A stretch of DNA of 64,000 nucleotides from Adineta vaga. Lineage: Eukaryota > Animalia > Rotifera. Below, piece after piece: positions 31,401-41,858 of this stretch. The stretch is from the NCBI GenBank assembly GCA_021613535.1, contig CP075496.1, positions 12,648,001 through 12,712,000 of the forward strand, in the 5' to 3' direction. The translations under genes were made by a program, and so were the position numbers. The notes beneath the pieces were generated by a model, which made no database searches, was not told where the DNA came from, and was given only the letters and a program-made list of their open reading frames with translations. The stretch's first letter is position 1, and every line of letters begins with the position of its first letter.

Positions 31401-34400
31401 GTGCAATTAAAAATCTTGAGCAAACACAAGGAACATGGCGACAAGCTCCAACTGCCGCTCGACATGAAGCTCAATTGGAAAGACTTAAAAGTGAATTAAA
31501 GGTTAGAAAACGAAGCAAAAAAAAGAAAACGAAACGAGATTATTGTCAATGATTATTAACTATATACAGATATAATATTAAACAGAAAGGATTTTTTAAT
31601 TGACGGGTACAAGTGGCGTCAATTTAGGATCATCTTTACCAGAAACATAAACAGGAAAGTCAATAATACGTAGTTTTTCACAATAATTGCCTAGAAAAGA
31701 TATACGAATGAATGAGAGATGATATCGTTTTTTTTTCTTTACCAGGAACGAATGGATCACCGTCTTCCATAAGACTATTTCCATATCGAACACTTATTCG
31801 AGTTCCCATTTGATTCATAACTGCAGCATAATCATATTCTGATTCTTGTTGTTGATGGTGTTGTTCTTGAAATTGTTCTCCTTCTAAATATAGATGAAAA
31901 TTTCAGTATATTATGAATAATAATAAGATCATAGAAGAAACAATGTACCTTCGACTTGTTTATAAACGACTTTCTTGATAATTGTTTGTCCAGGAACACA
32001 GCAACATTTAACACACCATCTGCCTTGTTGCTGCATCTGTTGGTTTTGTTGTTGTTGCTGTTGTTGGTGGTGGTGTTGTTGCTGCTGCTGGTATTGTTGT
32101 TGTTGTTGTTGTTGTGGAGGTGGTGGTGGTACTGGTGGAAGAGATCCAGCTGGTGGTAATTCAATACAGAATAGTTCTGGTCGAAGATGTGGTGGTAAAT
32201 GTGCATATTTCTTCGATTCTGGACAAGGCACAAGACAAAGACCAGTTTTAGGATCAACCATAGGAGTTGTTCGTTCGAAAACAGCATCCGTTTCATATGC
32301 ACGATTGTTATCAAGCATACGAACTGTAGATGAACGAGCCTGGTTTTGTTCTAGTTGGTTAATCATTGGTATTGAATTCGATCGACGTGATTGTTGATCT
32401 ATTATATGCGATGAAACTTGTTGTGATGATTGGTTAGAAATAAGTGAGTCTTGTTGTATTGATACAGGCTCAGAATGTGCGCGATATCGTTGTTGTTGCT
32501 GTTCGTCTTCTTCCTCGTGTTTACTAGAAGGTATATTTTCGTATTTTTGTGATTGAGGTGTTATTCGTGAGGAAAAGTGTAAATTTGATTGGTAATTACT
32601 ATCATCGAAGGACAAATGTGATGGTACAGGTAAACTATGATCGTACACCTGCTGCTGCTGCTGTTGTTGTTGTTGTTGCTGTTGTTGTTGTTGTTGTTGT
32701 TGTTGTTCATGTCCCATATATTCATTATACGGTGATGGCGTTGATATAGGTACTGGTGGAATAACATGATGAGTTGATTGAATTAATGGTGGAGTATATT
32801 CAATCGTTTGTTGTCCTCGTGAATCGGTCGAAAGATCTCTTGTTGTTACTTGAGGTACGTATGGTTTTGTATCAAATGTTGATGGTGTTTGATCATATGT
32901 ATGTTGTATAATATTTGATTGTTTCATGACATCATGTGATGCTGTTTGTGTCCATCCATCACTACAATGAATTGCATCAGAACCAAAAGGAAGTTGTGGT
33001 TGTTCTTGATGACCAGTATGAGAAGATGCAAATGCATTTGATTGTTGCATAAATTGTTGATTTAATTGCAGTATTGATTTTCGTAAGGATTGTTGATCAT
33101 CTGTTGTAAGTTGTTGAGAATTCATGAGTTGTTGTTCATATTGTTGTTGTTGTTCGTGATTCCATGATTCTCGATATTTCGCATAACAACGAGCAATACA
33201 TTCACGTAAATCAAAAACTTCTTCATCTTCTTTGGTATCATCATCATCATCATCTTCACTTCGATTATCACTTGTGGTTGGTGATGTCAATGGTAATGGT
33301 TGATGTCCACTATAGATACTTTGTTGATCAGCTGATGGAATTATCGAGGCGATTGAACGAACAGGTCGTCTTTGTGTTGTTTGAAGTGTATGATGATCTG
33401 GTGTAGGTGGTGCTGGAAAATCATATCCACTGGTAGTAGCTGATCCTAATATTTGATTCGTATCTCTTGTTGCTAACGAAGGTGGTGGTGGTGGCAATGA
33501 ACTATATGTATCATAAATTGAACCGTCAACTTCATCACTACGTAAATCTGATTGTGGAATTCGTTCATGCATTTGTTCACTAGTAGAACTTTGATGAAGA
33601 AGATTTTGATGATCTTCTTCGCAAGTTGATGATACAGGTAAAATTGATCGTGGTGTAGCTGATTCAAGTGATTCATTTGTATAATTTTGCAGATCATAAT
33701 TTCGAATAGTTCCTGGCGGTTGATAAAGATCTACTGTTGGTTGAACAGTATTGGGAGTTGTAGTTGTCGTACTAATAGATTGATAATCATCAGAGGACTT
33801 TATATGTCCTCCAGCATGTTGAGAATAAGATTCAGATTCAAACCGTTTCAAATAATCATTTATACTAAATGATTCACTTTCTTCATGATGTCCATATTGT
33901 TTATGGAAACTATCTCTCGGTGAATTATCTGGGACACTGTCTTGAGAATAAAATGAACGTCGAGTATATTCGACTGTACCAGTTGGAATTGATCCTCCAG
34001 TTAATCGTCGACTAGGAGGCTGTGAATCATAAATTTGAGATATAGGAACGGAAGCAGGTTTTTGTTGAAACTGATCCGATGAACCAATTGGTTGATTTGT
34101 ATAATCGTACCGTTGTTTTTGGTCCAATTGATGAGGATCAGTTTCAGACGTTGAATGAAGTGTTGTGGCTTCAGATGGATAATTAAATGCTTCTTGTAAT
34201 TGTGGTAATTGCTGTCGAGTATCTTCACCATTATAGGAATAATGAGAAGAAGGTTGATCTGTACTTTGATAATCAAAAAGAGGTTCTTTATTTTGATAAC
34301 TTTGTTTGCTATAATCAAATGTTCCAGCTGGTTGATCGTAACTTCGTTGAATTTGTGAAGTAGGACCAGATGCTGATTGAGGGTGAAAATATTCCGATGA

Positions 34401-37400
34401 ACTCAATGCTTGACTTGTATAATCATACGTTTGTTTTGGTTCTGTTCGTTGTGTATGAACTTCTGGTGAAATATAAGCACCTGTTTCTTCACCTCCGAAA
34501 TCAGGTGGTTGTTGATGTTCAGTATTATCAATATTGAATGGATACTGAACTGATTGTTGTTCTGTATTTTGATGATCGTATCCTGGTACTTGACTCTGAG
34601 TATTGCCTGATGCATAATCAAATGTGCCAGCTGCTTGATCAAAAGTACCTTGAGCTTGAGATGTTGGCACAGATGCTTGATGTTGTTGATAATAATCTGT
34701 TGAGGTTAGTGCTTGACTGGTATAATCATATGTTGTCTTTTGATCCGTTTGTTGAACATTCGTTTCAGGTGATATATAAGTACCTGTATCGACACTACTA
34801 TAATCTATTGATGGTTGCTGATCAATATTTTGATAATCATACGTTGGTGCTTGAGATTGCGTATACGTTTGTTGACCTGTTGGTGTTGGTACAGATGTAA
34901 CTTGCTGTTGTTGATAATAATCTAATGTTTGTCGTTGTTCATTGATATTAGCTTCGATTCGAGGTGGTGAATGTGTATTTGTCATTGTCGTAGGATAATC
35001 GTATAAACCTTGCTGTGGTATTTGTTGACCATCAGCAGTATCGTACGAATATTGAGAAGCTTGTTGATCGACGCTTTGATAATCATAGACAGGCTCTTGG
35101 GAAAGATAAGTTTCTTTTGTATATTCATAGGTTCCAGTTGGTTGACTATAAACTTCTTGAGTCTGAGATATAGGAACTGATGCTGTTTGTTGTTGATAAT
35201 AATCAGCAGAACTAAGTGTTTGATTAGGATAATTATACGTTTGTTGTTGTTCTACTTGTTGTATATTAGTTGAAGATGGAACATAAACAGTCGATCCGAG
35301 TGTATCGTAATTGAATGGTTGTTGTTGTTGTTGTGTATTTTCAATATTATATGGATACTGTAATGATTGTTGTTCAATATTTTGATAATCATAAGTTGGT
35401 ATTTGAGTTTGAGGACTTCCTCCCATATAATCATATGCATTTGATTGTTGAATATGTGTTTCTTGACTTTGAATAAATTGTGCTGGTGTTTGTTGTTGAT
35501 AATAATTTGATGTAAGATGTTGTATATCACTTGGAATAGTAGCATCAGTGGATTCATATGCAGAATATGGTAATTGATTTGCATAGTCATACGATGCTTG
35601 TTCATGCTGTTGTTGTTGTTGTTGATGATGATGATGTAAAGCTTGTTGAGCAAATTCATTATTAGCTGAAGGGACAGTTTGATACGGAGCATAATCAAAT
35701 GCTTTAGATCCGTATATGAATCTTGAATATTGATTGGTTTAAATTGATGATAATCGCCTCCCGTAGATTGGATATTTGTTGATGGTATACCAGCGATATT
35801 CAATGTCGGTTGAGTATATGGTATTTGAGTTGTTTGAGTATTAGTAATATCTGATGAGCGTATGGTTGATGGAGCAGCATTGCCATAATTATATCCACCT
35901 GTAGGATTATAAGATTTTTCAGATGTACGAATGGATGTTGATGTATGGATTGATTCTTGTAAAGTTTCTAAAACGAAAACGTGAAATTAGCGTAGAATAT
36001 AGCTACCATAATGTTTGTTTATTACCATCGTATGGTGAATAACTTCCTTGTGAAGAAAACGTTTGAAATCCACCGTTGGCTTGACGTTGTTCTTGTCTTT
36101 GATGATGACCAGATTGTTTATGACGTTTCGCTCTTCGTGCTTGTCGAGCAGCTCGCCGTCTCGCTAATCGTTGACGATGAGCTTCGAAACATCGCATGAT
36201 ACAATTATCAATATCGAATGTTATTTCTTGTCGCTGTTGTAGATGCATGTTATCAGTTTTACTAACGTCTTCGTTATTAATGATTTGAGAAGCTGTCGAT
36301 ATAACCTTCTCGTTACCTTGTTGTTTCTGTTCAAAATTGGAAGGAAATGAAGAAGATTGGTAAGGTGAATCACGCTGTTCAAATGATGTAGTGGATAAAC
36401 CTTGAAGATCAAGTGTATTCTGCATATTAGCATTGATATTGTCGTCATTGAACGCAGTTGACTCGGCTTGATTATATAATCGTGCTTCATTTTCTCTTCT
36501 CTGTTCATCACTTATCGTCGCCGTCTTATATTCATCACTGAATAAAAATCAATATGTTAATGAAAGATTCATGAGTGTAATCGAAAGAAAAAAAAACCGA
36601 CAAGCTTCGTTCTAGATTTTACTTGTCGTCGTGAAGGTCTTTGTCAATGTATGTCAGTAAATGGGTGTAAACTACTAGTTTATTGATATGTGAACAATTA
36701 TGAGAGCAAAAAATAGAGCATGATAGTAAGTATATTTATGTGAATTATAGCAGCAAAAAATACTTCTCTTTGAAAAATTAGAGCAGAAAAAAAATGTGTC
36801 GAGATTAAAAAAATAGATTGTTGTGTGTGAAGTTGAGCAGAGCGCTTAGATGTGATCATTGAATGTCTTTTTATTTGTGTAGGTGTGTGTGTGTAGATGT
36901 GCATATGTGCATAGTTGTATGTGCTAGACTACCTGTTTGCAAAACTTGCACTACCATATTCTCCATAACATTCTTGAAAAAAAACCGATGAACTAGAGTT
37001 TTTTTCGCTTATCAATAAAGATATCAACAAACCTGGTGGAATATGTTGTTGCGGTGGAGCTGGAAATCGTGGTGCTTGAAATGTATGTTGTTGATGTTGT
37101 TGAAATTGCTGTTGCTGGTGCTGGTGCTGTTGTTGAAATTGTTGTTGCTGGTGCTGTTCTTGAAATTGTTGCTGCTGTTGTTGTTGTTGTTGTTGAAATT
37201 GTTGCTGCTGTTGCTGTTGTTGAAATTGTTCTGCATCTGCTGGATTGCGATAGATCACTAAGAAAAGGTAATTGCGAAGTATATTTTAGTACTAAAATGA
37301 TAGTTAGATTTTTTTGATTTACCTTGAGGACGAACAGTACTATTTAGTTCTGTCCGAAGTCGATTAATATCCGATCGAAGAATTATTGTTGGTTGCGGTG

Positions 37401-40400
37401 CCTGAATATAAATTGGAGGAAGAGGTTCTAAAATACAGATAAATTTCGAATGAATTTGTTTTAATTTCTTTAAGGGAAATTTGTACCAAGTAAACTTCCT
37501 CCAACAGGTGCATCCTGATATTGTTGTAGAGTTTCATTGATTACTTTTGATTGAAGATCAACGAGTACATCATTGACAACAGCCTGTGCAACAGATAATC
37601 CTTCAACTTGTGATGTATAACTTGGTATGCCTGATGGAATTTGAGATGGACCTGGCGGTCGTACAGGTCTTTGTTGTTGTTGTTGTGGTTGTGCCATAAA
37701 TGGTGCTCTTATGGGCTGTGGTAATCGCTGTGCCGCAGTGGGACCAAACACAGGAATATACGGTCCTGCATTAACAGTATTAATATTTGTAGCAGTTTGA
37801 GTATTCGATATAGGCTTTGATTGTGCTTGACCTCCAACTTCTAGTTGATGCCTACGAGGTAAAAATGCGTGAATCAATTAACTGGGTCGAGCGAATGAAA
37901 TTGAAAAAAAAGAAAGGCTGTGACAGCCCATCTACACTGACATAGAGAGAGCAAAAAAAGGGACGCCGTCGATTCGTTCGTTCTATGTACGCCTTAACCC
38001 TGAAAATGGTCCATTAGCAATTTTTTTCTCTTTGCCTCATTTTATATTACTCTCCATCACGAGAACATAGTTGTGCCTATCAGAGTAAGACGAAATAAAT
38101 CGATATTGAAGACCCTTCAAGCAATCAGTCGTGTCCATCTTGATGTCGTATGCATTGCGCAAGATATACTCTCATTAGAGAAAGAAAAGAAAGAATCAAT
38201 CAATCAGTCAGACAATTTTCTTCTTGTTGAACATATTACAGAAATTCTTATAAATTTACCTAAATGGTGATAAATTAGGTGTTTGTGCGTCAGGAAAATA
38301 TTTTGACATCTCGGCCGATGAATCAAGGCTCGAAATAGAATGAAAAGAACTGGTTGATTGTACACCATCATATGAGTTGGAACAGAGAGCGTTTGTTGTT
38401 GTTGTTGTTGTTGATGATGTTCTGCTGTGTTAATATTAGACTGTTCTGTTTCATGAACTAGATTATAAAGACAATTTCATATTTATATCTATACTTGATG
38501 CTTTGTTTAAAAGCAGGCAAAAAAATGAATTTTACATAACTTTAATTTATATAGATACACCGTAAAAAACAATTTTTGAAAATTTTAATAAATTAGAGAA
38601 CTGTGTAGTAACATATCATAACTTTTCTTACTCTTCCTCTCCCTCCTCTCAATATTACGTACAAGATGCTGTAGATTGATGTTGTGCATTCTCAGGACCA
38701 CGGTCATGCCCATGATGATGATGATGATGATGACGATGATATTGAAATTCTTCCATATATGCTTTGTTGTTGCCGCTTTTCAATTAAGTATTCTCGTCGT
38801 TTTTACTATTCTTTGATGCAGCCTCTAAAATATGTTCATGAAGAGTGAAGAAAATGAGTGATTGCTCGATGTCGCGTCTCGATATAATATGCGGTAAGGA
38901 TAGATATATCTCATATATGAAAATGAATATGCGTAGCTGTCCGTTACACTTTGATGATTTTGTTATTCATTATCGTCGTGTTGTTACTTCTTATTACTAT
39001 TTATCGCTATTGTTATCATCGCAAATATACGATCAACGAACTAATTGTCGTTTACATAAGCAAACGAATTAAAATGATTCATAGATATTTTTGTTTTTCA
39101 GGCATTGAAACGAGCAAAACAATGTGCTAGTATAGCATTACAAGATGAAAATTTAATTGAAACAAGTCTAGAATTCTATAGTAAAGTTTCTCAACTGTTA
39201 TTAAGATATGTTGGTGTTCGACCAACAGAGTAAGTTCAACATTCCTCTCTCCACTTCTTTCAAAAAACGATCTTTTTATTTATTTAAGTTCGGAGGTAAC
39301 ATTCTCTTCCGAAGTGCCATGGATATGGCGTCTCTTACCAGATTATTACATCGATGATATATGGGACTTTCTTATGTCAGCTGCAATGTAAGTATGATTT
39401 TTGTCACTTACCTGAATACTTATTTTATTTTATGATGTGATGATATAAAAAATGTGCACAAATATGTAGGGTGAATATATGAAGTTCATTCTCAGTCATC
39501 CTTAGAACCATGACCGTCCTTAACAGAAGAATATCATAGATAGATATGTATATGTATCAAAGAGACCGTGACAAACATCTTAGTAATGACACTATCAAAG
39601 ATTTTAATAGACAATAGTCAAAAAGCATGACAGATATCTAACTAATGACACAATTACCGAGCATATCAAACTTTAGTCAAAAATCACTAGAGACTGTAAC
39701 GAAAGAAGTCTATTATTTGAAAAAATTTACTTCTTTTTTCAATGTCAAAAAAAGATTGTTCTTTGTTTCTTTTGATTTCTAAGGATGGTACCACAAACAT
39801 TATCAAAACGTAATATTGATGACATTTTAACATTAATGATATTTATTATTTGTGCACCACGTCACTATGTACAGAATCCTCATATTATAGCTAAAGCAGT
39901 TGAAGTTATACATTGGTTATGTGCAAGAAGTGATCATACATATTTACGACATGCAACTGAATATTTATTCAATCATCGTTTAGCACAAGATTCACTTGTT
40001 CGTGCATTGACGAAACTTTATGCTGGTAAATGAATCGAAAAAAGATTTGCTTTTCGTCAATGACAAGTATGCATTTGATTTCCTTTTCAAAGATGTCGAA
40101 ACAACTGGTGCAGCAACAGAATTTTATGACAAATTCAATATACGTTATCATATAAGTATTATCTTTAAATATGCATGGCAAAAACAATCATTTCGTCATT
40201 CATTTCTAACAACTGCTCGGTTAGATGAAATTAAAAATGAAAGTTTTGTTTAGAAATATTCATCTATTTATTTTTCTAGAGATGAAAAAGAATTTATTCG
40301 ATTTTTAAATATGGCAATAAATGATGTAACATATTTACTCGATGAAAGTCTTCAATTACTAAAAAAAATTCATGATATTGAAACAGATATTGATAATAAA

Positions 40401-41651
40401 GAAGAATGGGAAGCAACATCAATGGTACGTTTTCATAGTTCTGTTTTTTAATAAAAGCGATTGATTTCATCTGTACAGATTTCGACATGCTAGAAATAGT
40501 TAAGTTGTAATTAGAGTTTAACAATACTTTTGTCACGCCTAAATTAATTCACTGTGACTATCGAACTATCAATCAAAAGAAGTTTATTTTCGTATCTTGT
40601 AATGATATCGATGTTTTTCTTTTTTCTCATAGGAAATACGTATGAACAAAACTCAACAATTAAGTCAATATGAATCGCAATGTTGTACTTATTTACCACT
40701 TGGAATGGAAACATTACATATGTTGGAATATCTAAGTGCAAATGAACCAGGTCCATTTTGTTCACCGGTAAATAAAAACAAAGCACAATGAAATTATGGA
40801 AGATTTTCAATTTTTAGGAATTAGTCGATCGTTTAGCTGCTGTACTCGATATTAATTTAAATGAATTATGCGGTCCAAATTGTCGTCAATTAAAAGTAAA
40901 AGAGCCGAGTAAATGTTGTTTTGATCCAAAACGACTATTAGAAAAAATTGTTGAACTTTATTGTAATTTGGTATGAAGATTGAATGATAATGAAAAACAA
41001 ATAACATTTTCTTTGATTCTTTTTTTTTACAATTCAATAGGCACGTGATGAACGTTTCGCTGAAGCAATTACACGTGATGAAGTATGAAATAAAATTTGA
41101 ATTTTTCTTTGTTATTATTATTTTTTTTTCTTCCTGCTTTCTTAAAGCGTTCATATCGACCGACATTATTTCAAACAGCTATCGAACGTATTCAAAATCG
41201 TCAAATAACTACATCATCTCGGTTGGAAATACTTTTTAATTTGAGTCAACAAGCTTATCGTATTGCGGAAGAAAAATTGAAAGAAGAAATGGATCTATCC
41301 GATGCACCGGATGAATTTCGTGGTAAAAATAATCTTTTGTTTCTTTTCTTTTCTTAAGAATCTCTTTTTTTTTCTTGCTATAGATCCATTAATGTGTACA
41401 GTTATGACTGATCCAGTGATTCTACCAAGTGGAGTTACAATGGATCGATCAGTTATTACAAAACATTTACTCAATTCAAATACAGATCCATTTAATCGTC
41501 TTCCATTGACTGCTGATCAACTTGAACCTGGTAAAAAGATATTATATGTATGTGAACATATCGAGATTAATTTCTGTTTCTCATTTCAGCTGTCGAACTC
41601 AAAGAACAAATTGATAATTGGATACGCGATAAAAAAAATCGAACAGTTTAA
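28461..41651 (+). CDS. UBE4B: Ubiquitin conjugation factor E4 B (Ufd2, U-box), with a 7.6-kb intron at 31502-39101
   Basis: [54 protein letters not shown]-box [34 protein letters not shown]. Frame continues across GT 31502 ... AG 39101. Confidence 0.95.
31596..38756 (-). CDS. Nested antisense gene: ~1,900-aa Gln/Ser/Tyr/Thr-rich repeat protein of unknown function, with possible frame breaks
   Basis: About 10 GT-AG exons join ORFs 37470..37877, 36929..37258, 36003..36425, 31929..35426 and the terminal exon ending TPLVPVN* at 31596. 5' start uncertain (38756 or 38309). Confidence 0.8.
32649..32706 (-). repeat. (CAA/CAG)n microsatellite encoding poly-Gln; similar tracts at ~32030-32113 and ~37090-37225
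   Basis: TTG/CTG runs on the + strand; poly-Q in the nested gene's frame. Confidence 0.9.
33935..35560 (-). repeat. Degenerate ~100-aa coding tandem repeat, 5-6 copies
   Basis: Recurring TY(D/N)Y(T/P)xQxLxSxDYYQQxxASVPxSQxQxx(Y/F)xQxxGT(F/Y)(D/E)Y...YDYQx(I/T/V)(D/E)Q units, about 300-320 nt apart. Confidence 0.8.
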
Positions 41652-41858
41652 AACGTTAACAAAGTTCTTCTCTCTTTTTTTTTCTTCATTTCTTTTATTT
41701 GTTTGTGTTCTTTTTCTGTTCGTTAATGGATTTCCAATGATCTTTCATTTTTATTTATTCAAAATATCTTGTCATAACTCAAGCAAAGCAAAAGAAAAGA
41801 CAAACCAAGTCATTAGTCTCTATTAAGACATGTTTATCCTCTTGAAATTTATTCTAGA

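Follow-up and report, generated by a model that had tools for sequence, protein, structure and literature searches.

The stretch of DNA analysed here, referred to as the window, is 64,000 nucleotides (nt) of Adineta vaga contig CP075496.1, and all positions below are those of the window unless another locus is named. Almost the whole of one long intron of a UBE4-type ligase gene in this window is taken up by a 10-exon gene on the opposite strand, and this nested gene belongs to an undescribed protein family that the searches detect in bdelloid rotifers only. On balance, and with somewhat more confidence than doubt, we favour the reading that this bdelloid-only nested gene encodes an intracellular, disordered, phosphorylation-regulated scaffold and that its nesting is accidental.

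The host gene lies on the plus strand and encodes a UFD2/UBE4-type E4 ligase, in which Pfam recognizes Ufd2P_core followed by a C-terminal U-box. We call it UBE4-type because the domain evidence covers the UFD2/UBE4 class and does not separate UBE4A from UBE4B. Ufd2P_core (PF10408) was matched on the plus strand at 39776-40030 (E = 1.8e-10) and at 40254-40448 (E = 8.6e-16), and the U-box (PF04564) lies within 41281-41823 in the last large host exon (E = 1.6e-20). The Ufd2P_core domain carries on across both flanks of the long intron, according to Pfam and also to the annotation of orthologues. Splice signals and the host domains place this intron at 31502-39101 on the plus strand (7,600 nt), with the GT at 31502 and the AG at 39100-39101. 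The upstream exon ends in TTAAAG at 31501 and is followed by GTTAGA, and the downstream exon starts at 39102 after TTTTCAG.

The model of the nested gene was built by mapping an A. steineri orthologue (protein P0002, 1,916 amino acids) with tblastn and reading the junctions in three frames. The window gene was searched exon by exon, and full-length comparisons were made with database orthologues. From ATG to stop the gene spans 7,161 nt on the minus strand (31596-38756) and fills 94% of the host intron, with its whole coding region inside that intron. Between its ATG, at 38756, and the host acceptor there are 345 nt, and between its TAA stop, at 31598-31596, and the host donor there are 94 nt. 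The coding sequence amounts to 5,765 nt, or approximately 1,921 codons, and would need 1 more base to be divisible by 3. All nine introns are of the GT..AG type; six are 52 to 65 nt long, and the others are 234, 396, and 407 nt. A first-pass annotation of the sequence had reported a UBE4 intron of 7,600 nt nearly filled by a minus-strand gene of about 10 exons, with the same spacings on the stop and promoter sides. The exon ends of the host and the ten mapped exons bear this out, and both spacings are exact.

Exon 1 (38659-38756) contains a His run at 38706-38738 and an alternative donor at 38662, and both A. steineri P0002 and the paralogue-type protein P0062 share the N-terminus that it encodes. 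Exon 2 (38260-38424) has a poly-CAA tract at its 5' end and conserved island A at 38262-38366, and exon 3 (37487-37851) holds island B at 37518-37628, a predicted amphipathic helix with a pLDDT (predicted local distance difference test score) of approximately 81 in the Didymodactylos model. Further conserved islands lie in exon 4 (37323-37427) and in exon 5 (37033-37257), in the latter together with a Gln/Phe-rich tract. Exon 6 is a micro-exon of 40 nt (36933-36972) with a match in the Rotaria orthologue. Exon 7 (36026-36537) encodes the first Cx3C helix and an Arg-rich stretch at 36114-36224. Exon 8 (31949-35967; 4,019 nt) was recognized from its long open frame and by tblastn, and contains a frame change at approximately 35712. 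Exon 9 (31743-31883) was placed by tblastn and frame reading, and exon 10 (31596-31690), which carries the stop codon, is 90% identical to its A. steineri counterpart. All of these features are on the minus strand.

The spacing between the nested stop and the host exon, 94 nt in the window, ranges from 28 to 118 nt in four other species, and on the 5' side only 145 to 345 nt of room to the host exon is left across species. A canonical AATAAA was not seen by eye in 31502-31596. The nested 3' end may therefore be formed partly within the host exon, and spliced-leader trans-splicing may be required for the 5' end.

Two lines of evidence indicate that the nested gene is real. The minus strand contains an open frame of 1,269 codons (35738-31932) plus several shorter ones. 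The probability of a frame of this length arising by chance is approximately 1e-37 at the stop frequency of the window (6.5% of codons) and approximately 1e-36 at the local base composition. The ratio of nonsynonymous to synonymous substitution rates (dN/dS) relative to A. ricciae is 0.16 overall and likewise 0.16 in the repeats, which shows, at the level of sequence comparison, that the coding sequence is under purifying selection with its low-complexity repeats included. Because such an open frame is improbable by chance and dN/dS is approximately 0.16, these comparisons show the nested gene to be a real, independent protein-coding gene.

The integrity of the window copy needs separate consideration. 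At approximately 35712 the conserved frame shifts within exon 8, with no space for an intron. The window reads GGAT-CTAAAG where A. steineri has TAATTCTAAAG, so that one T is absent from the window, and the length difference relative to A. ricciae is 23 nt, a number not divisible by 3. Within exon 2, the CAA tract, which corresponds to poly-Gln in A. steineri, is out of frame with the adjacent conserved block, and there is a difference of 32 nt between the two species in this region. To keep the start codon in frame, the donor GTAATA at 38658 must be joined to the acceptor at 38425, and the tract is then read as poly-Thr. In addition, a 58-nt GTAATA..TTTTAG intron at 35968-36025 (minus strand), without which the sequence is again exactly colinear with the A. 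ricciae protein, has no counterpart in the continuous open frames (1,470 to 1,540 codons) of A. ricciae, A. steineri, and Rotaria. It looks like a lineage-specific intron gain or intronization. A. steineri has extra in-frame coding sequence at this place.

These features raise the question of whether the window copy is a recently inactivated, young pseudogene whose true lesions would be the frame break and the loss of frame on the 5' side of exon 2. The 1-nt gap relative to A. steineri DNA, the A. ricciae length difference, the 32-nt difference in exon 2, and the 58-nt intron, which holds an in-frame stop and is found in this genome alone, all fit such an inactivation. However, the 1,254 codons past the break remain open although approximately 17% of them are Gln codons, each a single transition away from a stop. 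Moreover, dN/dS is approximately 0.16 on each side of the break (0.165 over 73 aligned codons upstream of it), canonical splice sites rescue the joining of exons 1 and 2 as well as the 58-nt insertion, and a long-read error in homopolymer length or a variant of one haplotype explains the missing T equally well. We therefore consider inactivation unlikely, though not negligible, and take the break to be either an indel of the assembly or of a single haplotype, or else a mutation of very recent date. Two introns that would bypass the break while keeping the frame were also considered, one of 87 nt (35789..35704) and one of 322 nt (36025..35704). Both delete a segment that looks coding (dN/dS of 0.165), and neither is preferred.

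The nesting is conserved in other bdelloids, as a comparison suggested by the first-pass annotation brought out. In A. steineri and in the assemblies of two R. magnacalcarata isolates, the orthologue lies between a model with Ufd2P_core and U-box and a model with Ufd2P_core, both on the opposite strand and at distances of 145 to 147 nt and 46 to 56 nt, which reproduces the order of UBE4 half, antisense gene, and UBE4 half. The contigs of A. ricciae and Didymodactylos end inside the nested gene, and there the stop codon is 28 and 118 nt, respectively, from the Ufd2P_core model. The orthologues share their islands, exon pattern, and genomic position with the window gene. The notion, raised by the first-pass annotation, that the long intron is an assembly artefact joining unrelated pieces, so that the gene would not be truly nested, found nothing in its favour and can practically be dismissed, as the independent A. 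steineri and R. magnacalcarata assemblies keep the same order and the A. ricciae and Didymodactylos contigs, which are partial, match it on the side that they reach. Since the antisense-in-UBE4 layout is common to Adineta, Rotaria, and Didymodactylos, comparison of gene order shows that it is older than the divergence of the bdelloid families sampled. In the A. steineri (L006 7182-20745) and R. magnacalcarata (L007 7235-22481) loci, the annotation splits UBE4 into two models; this split is an annotation artefact due to the nesting.

The genome to which the window belongs contains exactly two loci of the family, the nested gene and a paralogue on contig C1 (C1:1940000-1959999). The paralogue sits in an inverted block that is collinear with window 12-54 kb and matches it at 54-47, 38.4-31.6, 28.2-24.5, 19.4-18, and 14-12 kb. 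The C1 block is without UBE4 and without two neighbouring genes found at approximately 41.8-44 kb in the window; by the annotation of orthologues, these two are PPP1R35-like and Ras/Roc-like. UBE4 is single copy in this genome, and a sensitive tblastx search for UBE4 remnants around the C1 paralogue gave noise only. The two paralogues have almost nothing in common beyond short islands, which include a Ser/Thr-Pro-rich block, the amphipathic helix, and the C-terminal ...RISVRYGN...IDFPVYVSG tail. The big exon of the C1 paralogue has Pro-rich PPPTPVY(R/Q) repeats in place of the Gln/Tyr repeats.

Didymodactylos carnosus also has a second locus (L011 7623-16870 and L012 5669-14916), which is a diverged copy of the family. 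It is annotated as a 532-amino-acid model spread over 6.9 kb, the central 3.7 kb of which contains no open frame of at least 120 amino acids, and it is adjoined on the other strand by a 139-amino-acid Ufd2P_core fragment. This locus probably arose by duplication of host and nested gene together and is now decaying. Given the collinear C1 block and the Didymodactylos fragment beside the diverged copy, the nested layout most likely predates the bdelloid genome duplication that gave rise to the two blocks, as far as gene order can tell.

The survival of the C1 paralogue after the loss of UBE4 shows that a host is not required for the nested gene to be kept, so that the gene does not depend on it. 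The first-pass annotation had proposed that transcription of the nested gene could interfere with UBE4. We also considered whether the antisense placement itself is functional, with convergent transcription or a 3' overlap with the host exon tuning reciprocally the E4 ligase and a bdelloid condensate scaffold or co-activator that is switched by phosphorylation and 14-3-3. Because the C1 paralogue outlived its host, a special coupling to UBE4 is less favoured, and we regard this proposal as improbable. The nesting would instead be an old accident of gene order and not an obligatory regulatory coupling.

To the sensitivity reached, the family appears undescribed and bdelloid restricted. A word-index search returned 20 proteins; those assigned to a species belong to Adineta ricciae, A. 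steineri, Rotaria magnacalcarata, R. socialis, and Didymodactylos carnosus. A HMMER profile built from 7 members and run against 1.84 billion representatives gave 32 matches at E <= 0.001; all that are named are bdelloid, and the remainder are unnamed metagenome proteins. A second word search with a compact copy that included the N-terminal islands likewise found bdelloids only. The relatives carry the database label "unnamed protein product," among them those of A. steineri (P0002, 1,916 amino acids), R. magnacalcarata (P0004, 1,771 amino acids), and Didymodactylos (P0018), none of which has a domain or a function described for it. Pfam searches with every exon and with four full-length members (P0002, P0031, P0035, and P0016) gave only sub-threshold noise, e.g., Med16_C and VPS13_N. 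No sequence in PDB was matched by two exon pieces or by the family profile, the last 180 residues of P0002 gave no usable match in the ESM Atlas, and the literature on bdelloid nested genes or bdelloid disordered proteins yielded nothing on this gene. The family may be older in origin, because fast-evolving disordered proteins can escape such searches. Three members from Rotaria sp. Silwood2 (P0048, P0050, and P0052) are 2,633 to 2,784 amino acids long, far longer than the other orthologues, and may be fused gene models or reflect further expansion of the repeat region.

The encoded protein is of strongly biased composition. Exon 8 encodes 16.9% Q, 11.4% S, 9.0% T, 8.1% P, and 7.0% Y, and both the His run and a 19-residue poly-Q tract were found. 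Motif spacing and MAFFT alignment delimit approximately 5.5 diverged repeats of about 100 amino acids at 33939-35621 (minus strand), which are 35 to 50% identical to each other. Self-BLASTP at E = 1e-4 did not find the repeat pairs, and Tandem Repeats Finder found Gln-codon arrays only. Within the repeat region (residues 40 to 600 of exon 8), Q reaches 18.5%, T 11.4%, S 11.1%, and Y 10.3%, so that Q, S, T, and Y together exceed 50%; K and R amount to 3.0%, and there is one aromatic residue per approximately 8 residues. The N-terminus is not hydrophobic and has no signal-peptide-like start, as judged from the sequence and not by a predictor.

Two members of the family were modelled with AlphaFold2 from alignments of 18 (P0018) and 15 (P0031) family sequences. 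The mean pLDDT scores of the two models were 39.6 and 44.7, corresponding to near-total disorder, and confidence was moderate or good only in the island helices and poly-Pro. In the P0031 model, the island B helix has a pLDDT of approximately 81 and is followed by two short helices, and the P0018 model gives approximately 62 for the helix of the second Cx3C island (residues 415 to 430) and approximately 88 for the poly-Pro. The protein is thus predicted to be almost wholly disordered. These results agree with most of what the first-pass annotation had said of the protein. The Q/S/T/Y/P low complexity, the His run, the poly-Q tracts, and the repeats of about 100 amino acids were all located, and the claimed lack of a signal peptide matches the non-hydrophobic N-terminus. 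Its statement that no family was recognized holds in Pfam, PDB, and the ESM Atlas, and its suggestion of a lineage-specific disordered protein is consistent with the bdelloid-only profile and word matches and with the AlphaFold2 models.

The disordered sequence is interspersed with short conserved islands, and all islands of the family are present in the window exons: GVQSTxSFHS..., the island helix, PIYIxAPxPTIIL, the two Cx3C helices, TGLCLVPCP...AHLPPHLRP, WCVxCCCxPG, and the C-terminal ...VRYGN...DFPVY tail. The Cx3C helix, FD[IL]xxCIxRC[FY]xx[HY]R, occurs twice. The first copy is followed by the Arg-rich stretch, and the second, at 33129-33224, follows an acidic run and was identified from the alignment and as a helix in the Didymodactylos model. 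In the alignments, the best-conserved island of the family is near invariant and lies beside the poly-Pro at 32151-32255. A Cys cluster (CxxCCC) at 31950-32024 is 75% identical in the C1 paralogue. These islands are likewise on the minus strand.

Comparison of orthologues further revealed two R..S.P sites at 32367-32489 (minus strand), RYRAHSEP (32466-32489) and RRSNSIP (32367-32387), which are 33 residues apart. The pair occurs at a fixed place, 60 to 95 residues upstream of AHLPPHL, in 16 of 16 orthologues. The first site has the form R[YHN]RAHS[EV]P (HRTYSQP in Didymodactylos) and is followed approximately 33 residues later by RRxxS[IN]P. The 16 orthologues are 350 to 1,900 residues long; R..S.P occurs exactly twice in 14 of them and three times in the remaining two. 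The C1-type paralogues are without any such motif. Basophilic AGC kinases have the consensus R-x-R-x-x-S, and mode 1 14-3-3 sites have the form R-x-x-pS-x-P; two of the latter at such a spacing suit a 14-3-3 dimer. Both conserved sites, RYRAHSEP and RRSNSIP, agree with the mode 1 motif, and the pair looks like putative kinase/14-3-3 sites.

Taken as a whole, these features would suit an intracellular, nearly fully disordered, multivalent scaffold (or co-activator). This reading is suggested by the start without signal-peptide character, the Arg-rich stretch, and the Tyr/Gln-rich region resembling that of the FET proteins (FUS/EWS/TAF15). The Tyr/Gln/Ser/Thr-rich repeats of about 100 amino acids would provide many weak self-association contacts, as in FUS and EWS, and the short islands would serve as docking or folding-on-binding modules. 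The module set would comprise the amphipathic helix, the two Cx3C helices, the Arg-rich stretch, which resembles a nuclear localization signal (NLS) or RNA-binding sequence, the invariant motif by the poly-Pro, and the CxxCCC cluster. Phosphorylation combined with two-site 14-3-3 binding is a common switch of localization or assembly. A basophilic (AGC-type) kinase may phosphorylate RxRAHSxP and RRxxSxP, a 14-3-3 dimer may then bind both sites, and the phosphorylation would thereby switch the localization or assembly of the scaffold.

Several points weigh against this reading. By our own estimate from composition, approximately 0.35 R..S.P motifs per protein are expected by chance, so that the pair derives its weight from conservation only, and the kinase/14-3-3 interpretation is drawn from short motifs. 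The AlphaFold2 alignments were shallow (15 to 18 sequences), and a small folded C-terminal domain may be present. Splicing, expression, and the 5' end of the gene are read from homology and splice signals alone. The assembly carries the uncompensated 1-nt frame break at approximately 35712, and the exon 1-2 junction requires a non-homologous reading of the CAA tract; because of these two features, the gene in this haplotype could be recently broken.

A narrower form of the scaffold reading is that the protein is a transcriptional co-activator, with a Gln/Tyr activation domain, an Arg-rich NLS, and nuclear exclusion by 14-3-3 as for CRTC, YAP, and FOXO. The conserved Arg-rich stretch, the tandem R..S.P sites, and the Gln-rich tracts with their EWS-like composition are what would be expected of such a protein, but there is no DNA-binding or known co-activator domain, and neither MamL-1 nor TORC nor another was found in Pfam up to E = 1. 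We consider this sub-case rather unlikely. A structural or stress-protective role is more doubtful still. According to the first-pass annotation, the protein could be a structural part of the syncytial integument or trophi or else a condensate/desiccation protein, and a disordered desiccation protectant belongs to the same class of explanation. The extreme low complexity, Tyr-rich repeats that are potentially cross-linkable, and confinement to bdelloids, which tolerate desiccation, are compatible with it. However, the N-terminus is not signal-peptide-like, and the kinase/14-3-3-type and NLS-like islands suggest a regulated intracellular protein, so that the integument or trophi role in particular is disfavoured. 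The composition, rich in Q, Y, S, and T with 3 to 6% K+R, is also unlike that of the LEA proteins of anhydrobiosis, which are rich in Lys, Glu, and Ala, and no LEA family was matched in Pfam.

Two known systems would work in a similar way to the nested protein, which is a member of neither. The nested protein is similar to the FET proteins in its regularly spaced Tyr residues within charge-poor, degenerate repeats rich in Gln, Ser, Thr, and Pro and in its predicted disorder. In contrast to them, it has no RRM, RGG, or RanBP2-type zinc finger according to Pfam searches of the exons and full-length orthologues; it is Gly-poor and net acidic, its repeats are of about 100 amino acids as opposed to the FET hexapeptides, and there is no sequence homology. 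The resemblance concerns a possible mode of action and not membership. The two R-x-x-S-x-P sites approximately 33 residues apart, the first of which also fits R-x-R-x-x-S, and the Arg/Lys-rich stretch nearby are reminiscent of 14-3-3-switched regulators such as CRTC, FOXO, HDAC4/5, and YAP. The defining domains of those regulators are absent from the nested protein. Neither the N-terminal MamL-1 of Mastermind/MAML nor the TORC_N of CRTC was listed in whole-library Pfam scans. As in other intron-nested antisense genes, a complete gene is housed in one host intron far longer than the common introns of 52 to 65 nt. As a nested gene, this case stands out only in being antisense, very large (94% fill), and tightly fitted (94 nt on the 3' side and 345 nt on the 5' side).

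In other respects, neither the taxon-restricted disordered protein nor the nesting is much out of the ordinary. The analysis provides a gene model, supported across species, for a large bdelloid-only family whose members are carried in databases as unnamed products, and the nesting explains why the host UBE4 is split in published annotations. The invariant pair of kinase/14-3-3-type sites and the conserved islands make an otherwise anonymous low-complexity protein testable. Finally, the duplicated locus, which kept the nested gene without its host, constitutes a natural experiment for the autonomy of nested genes.

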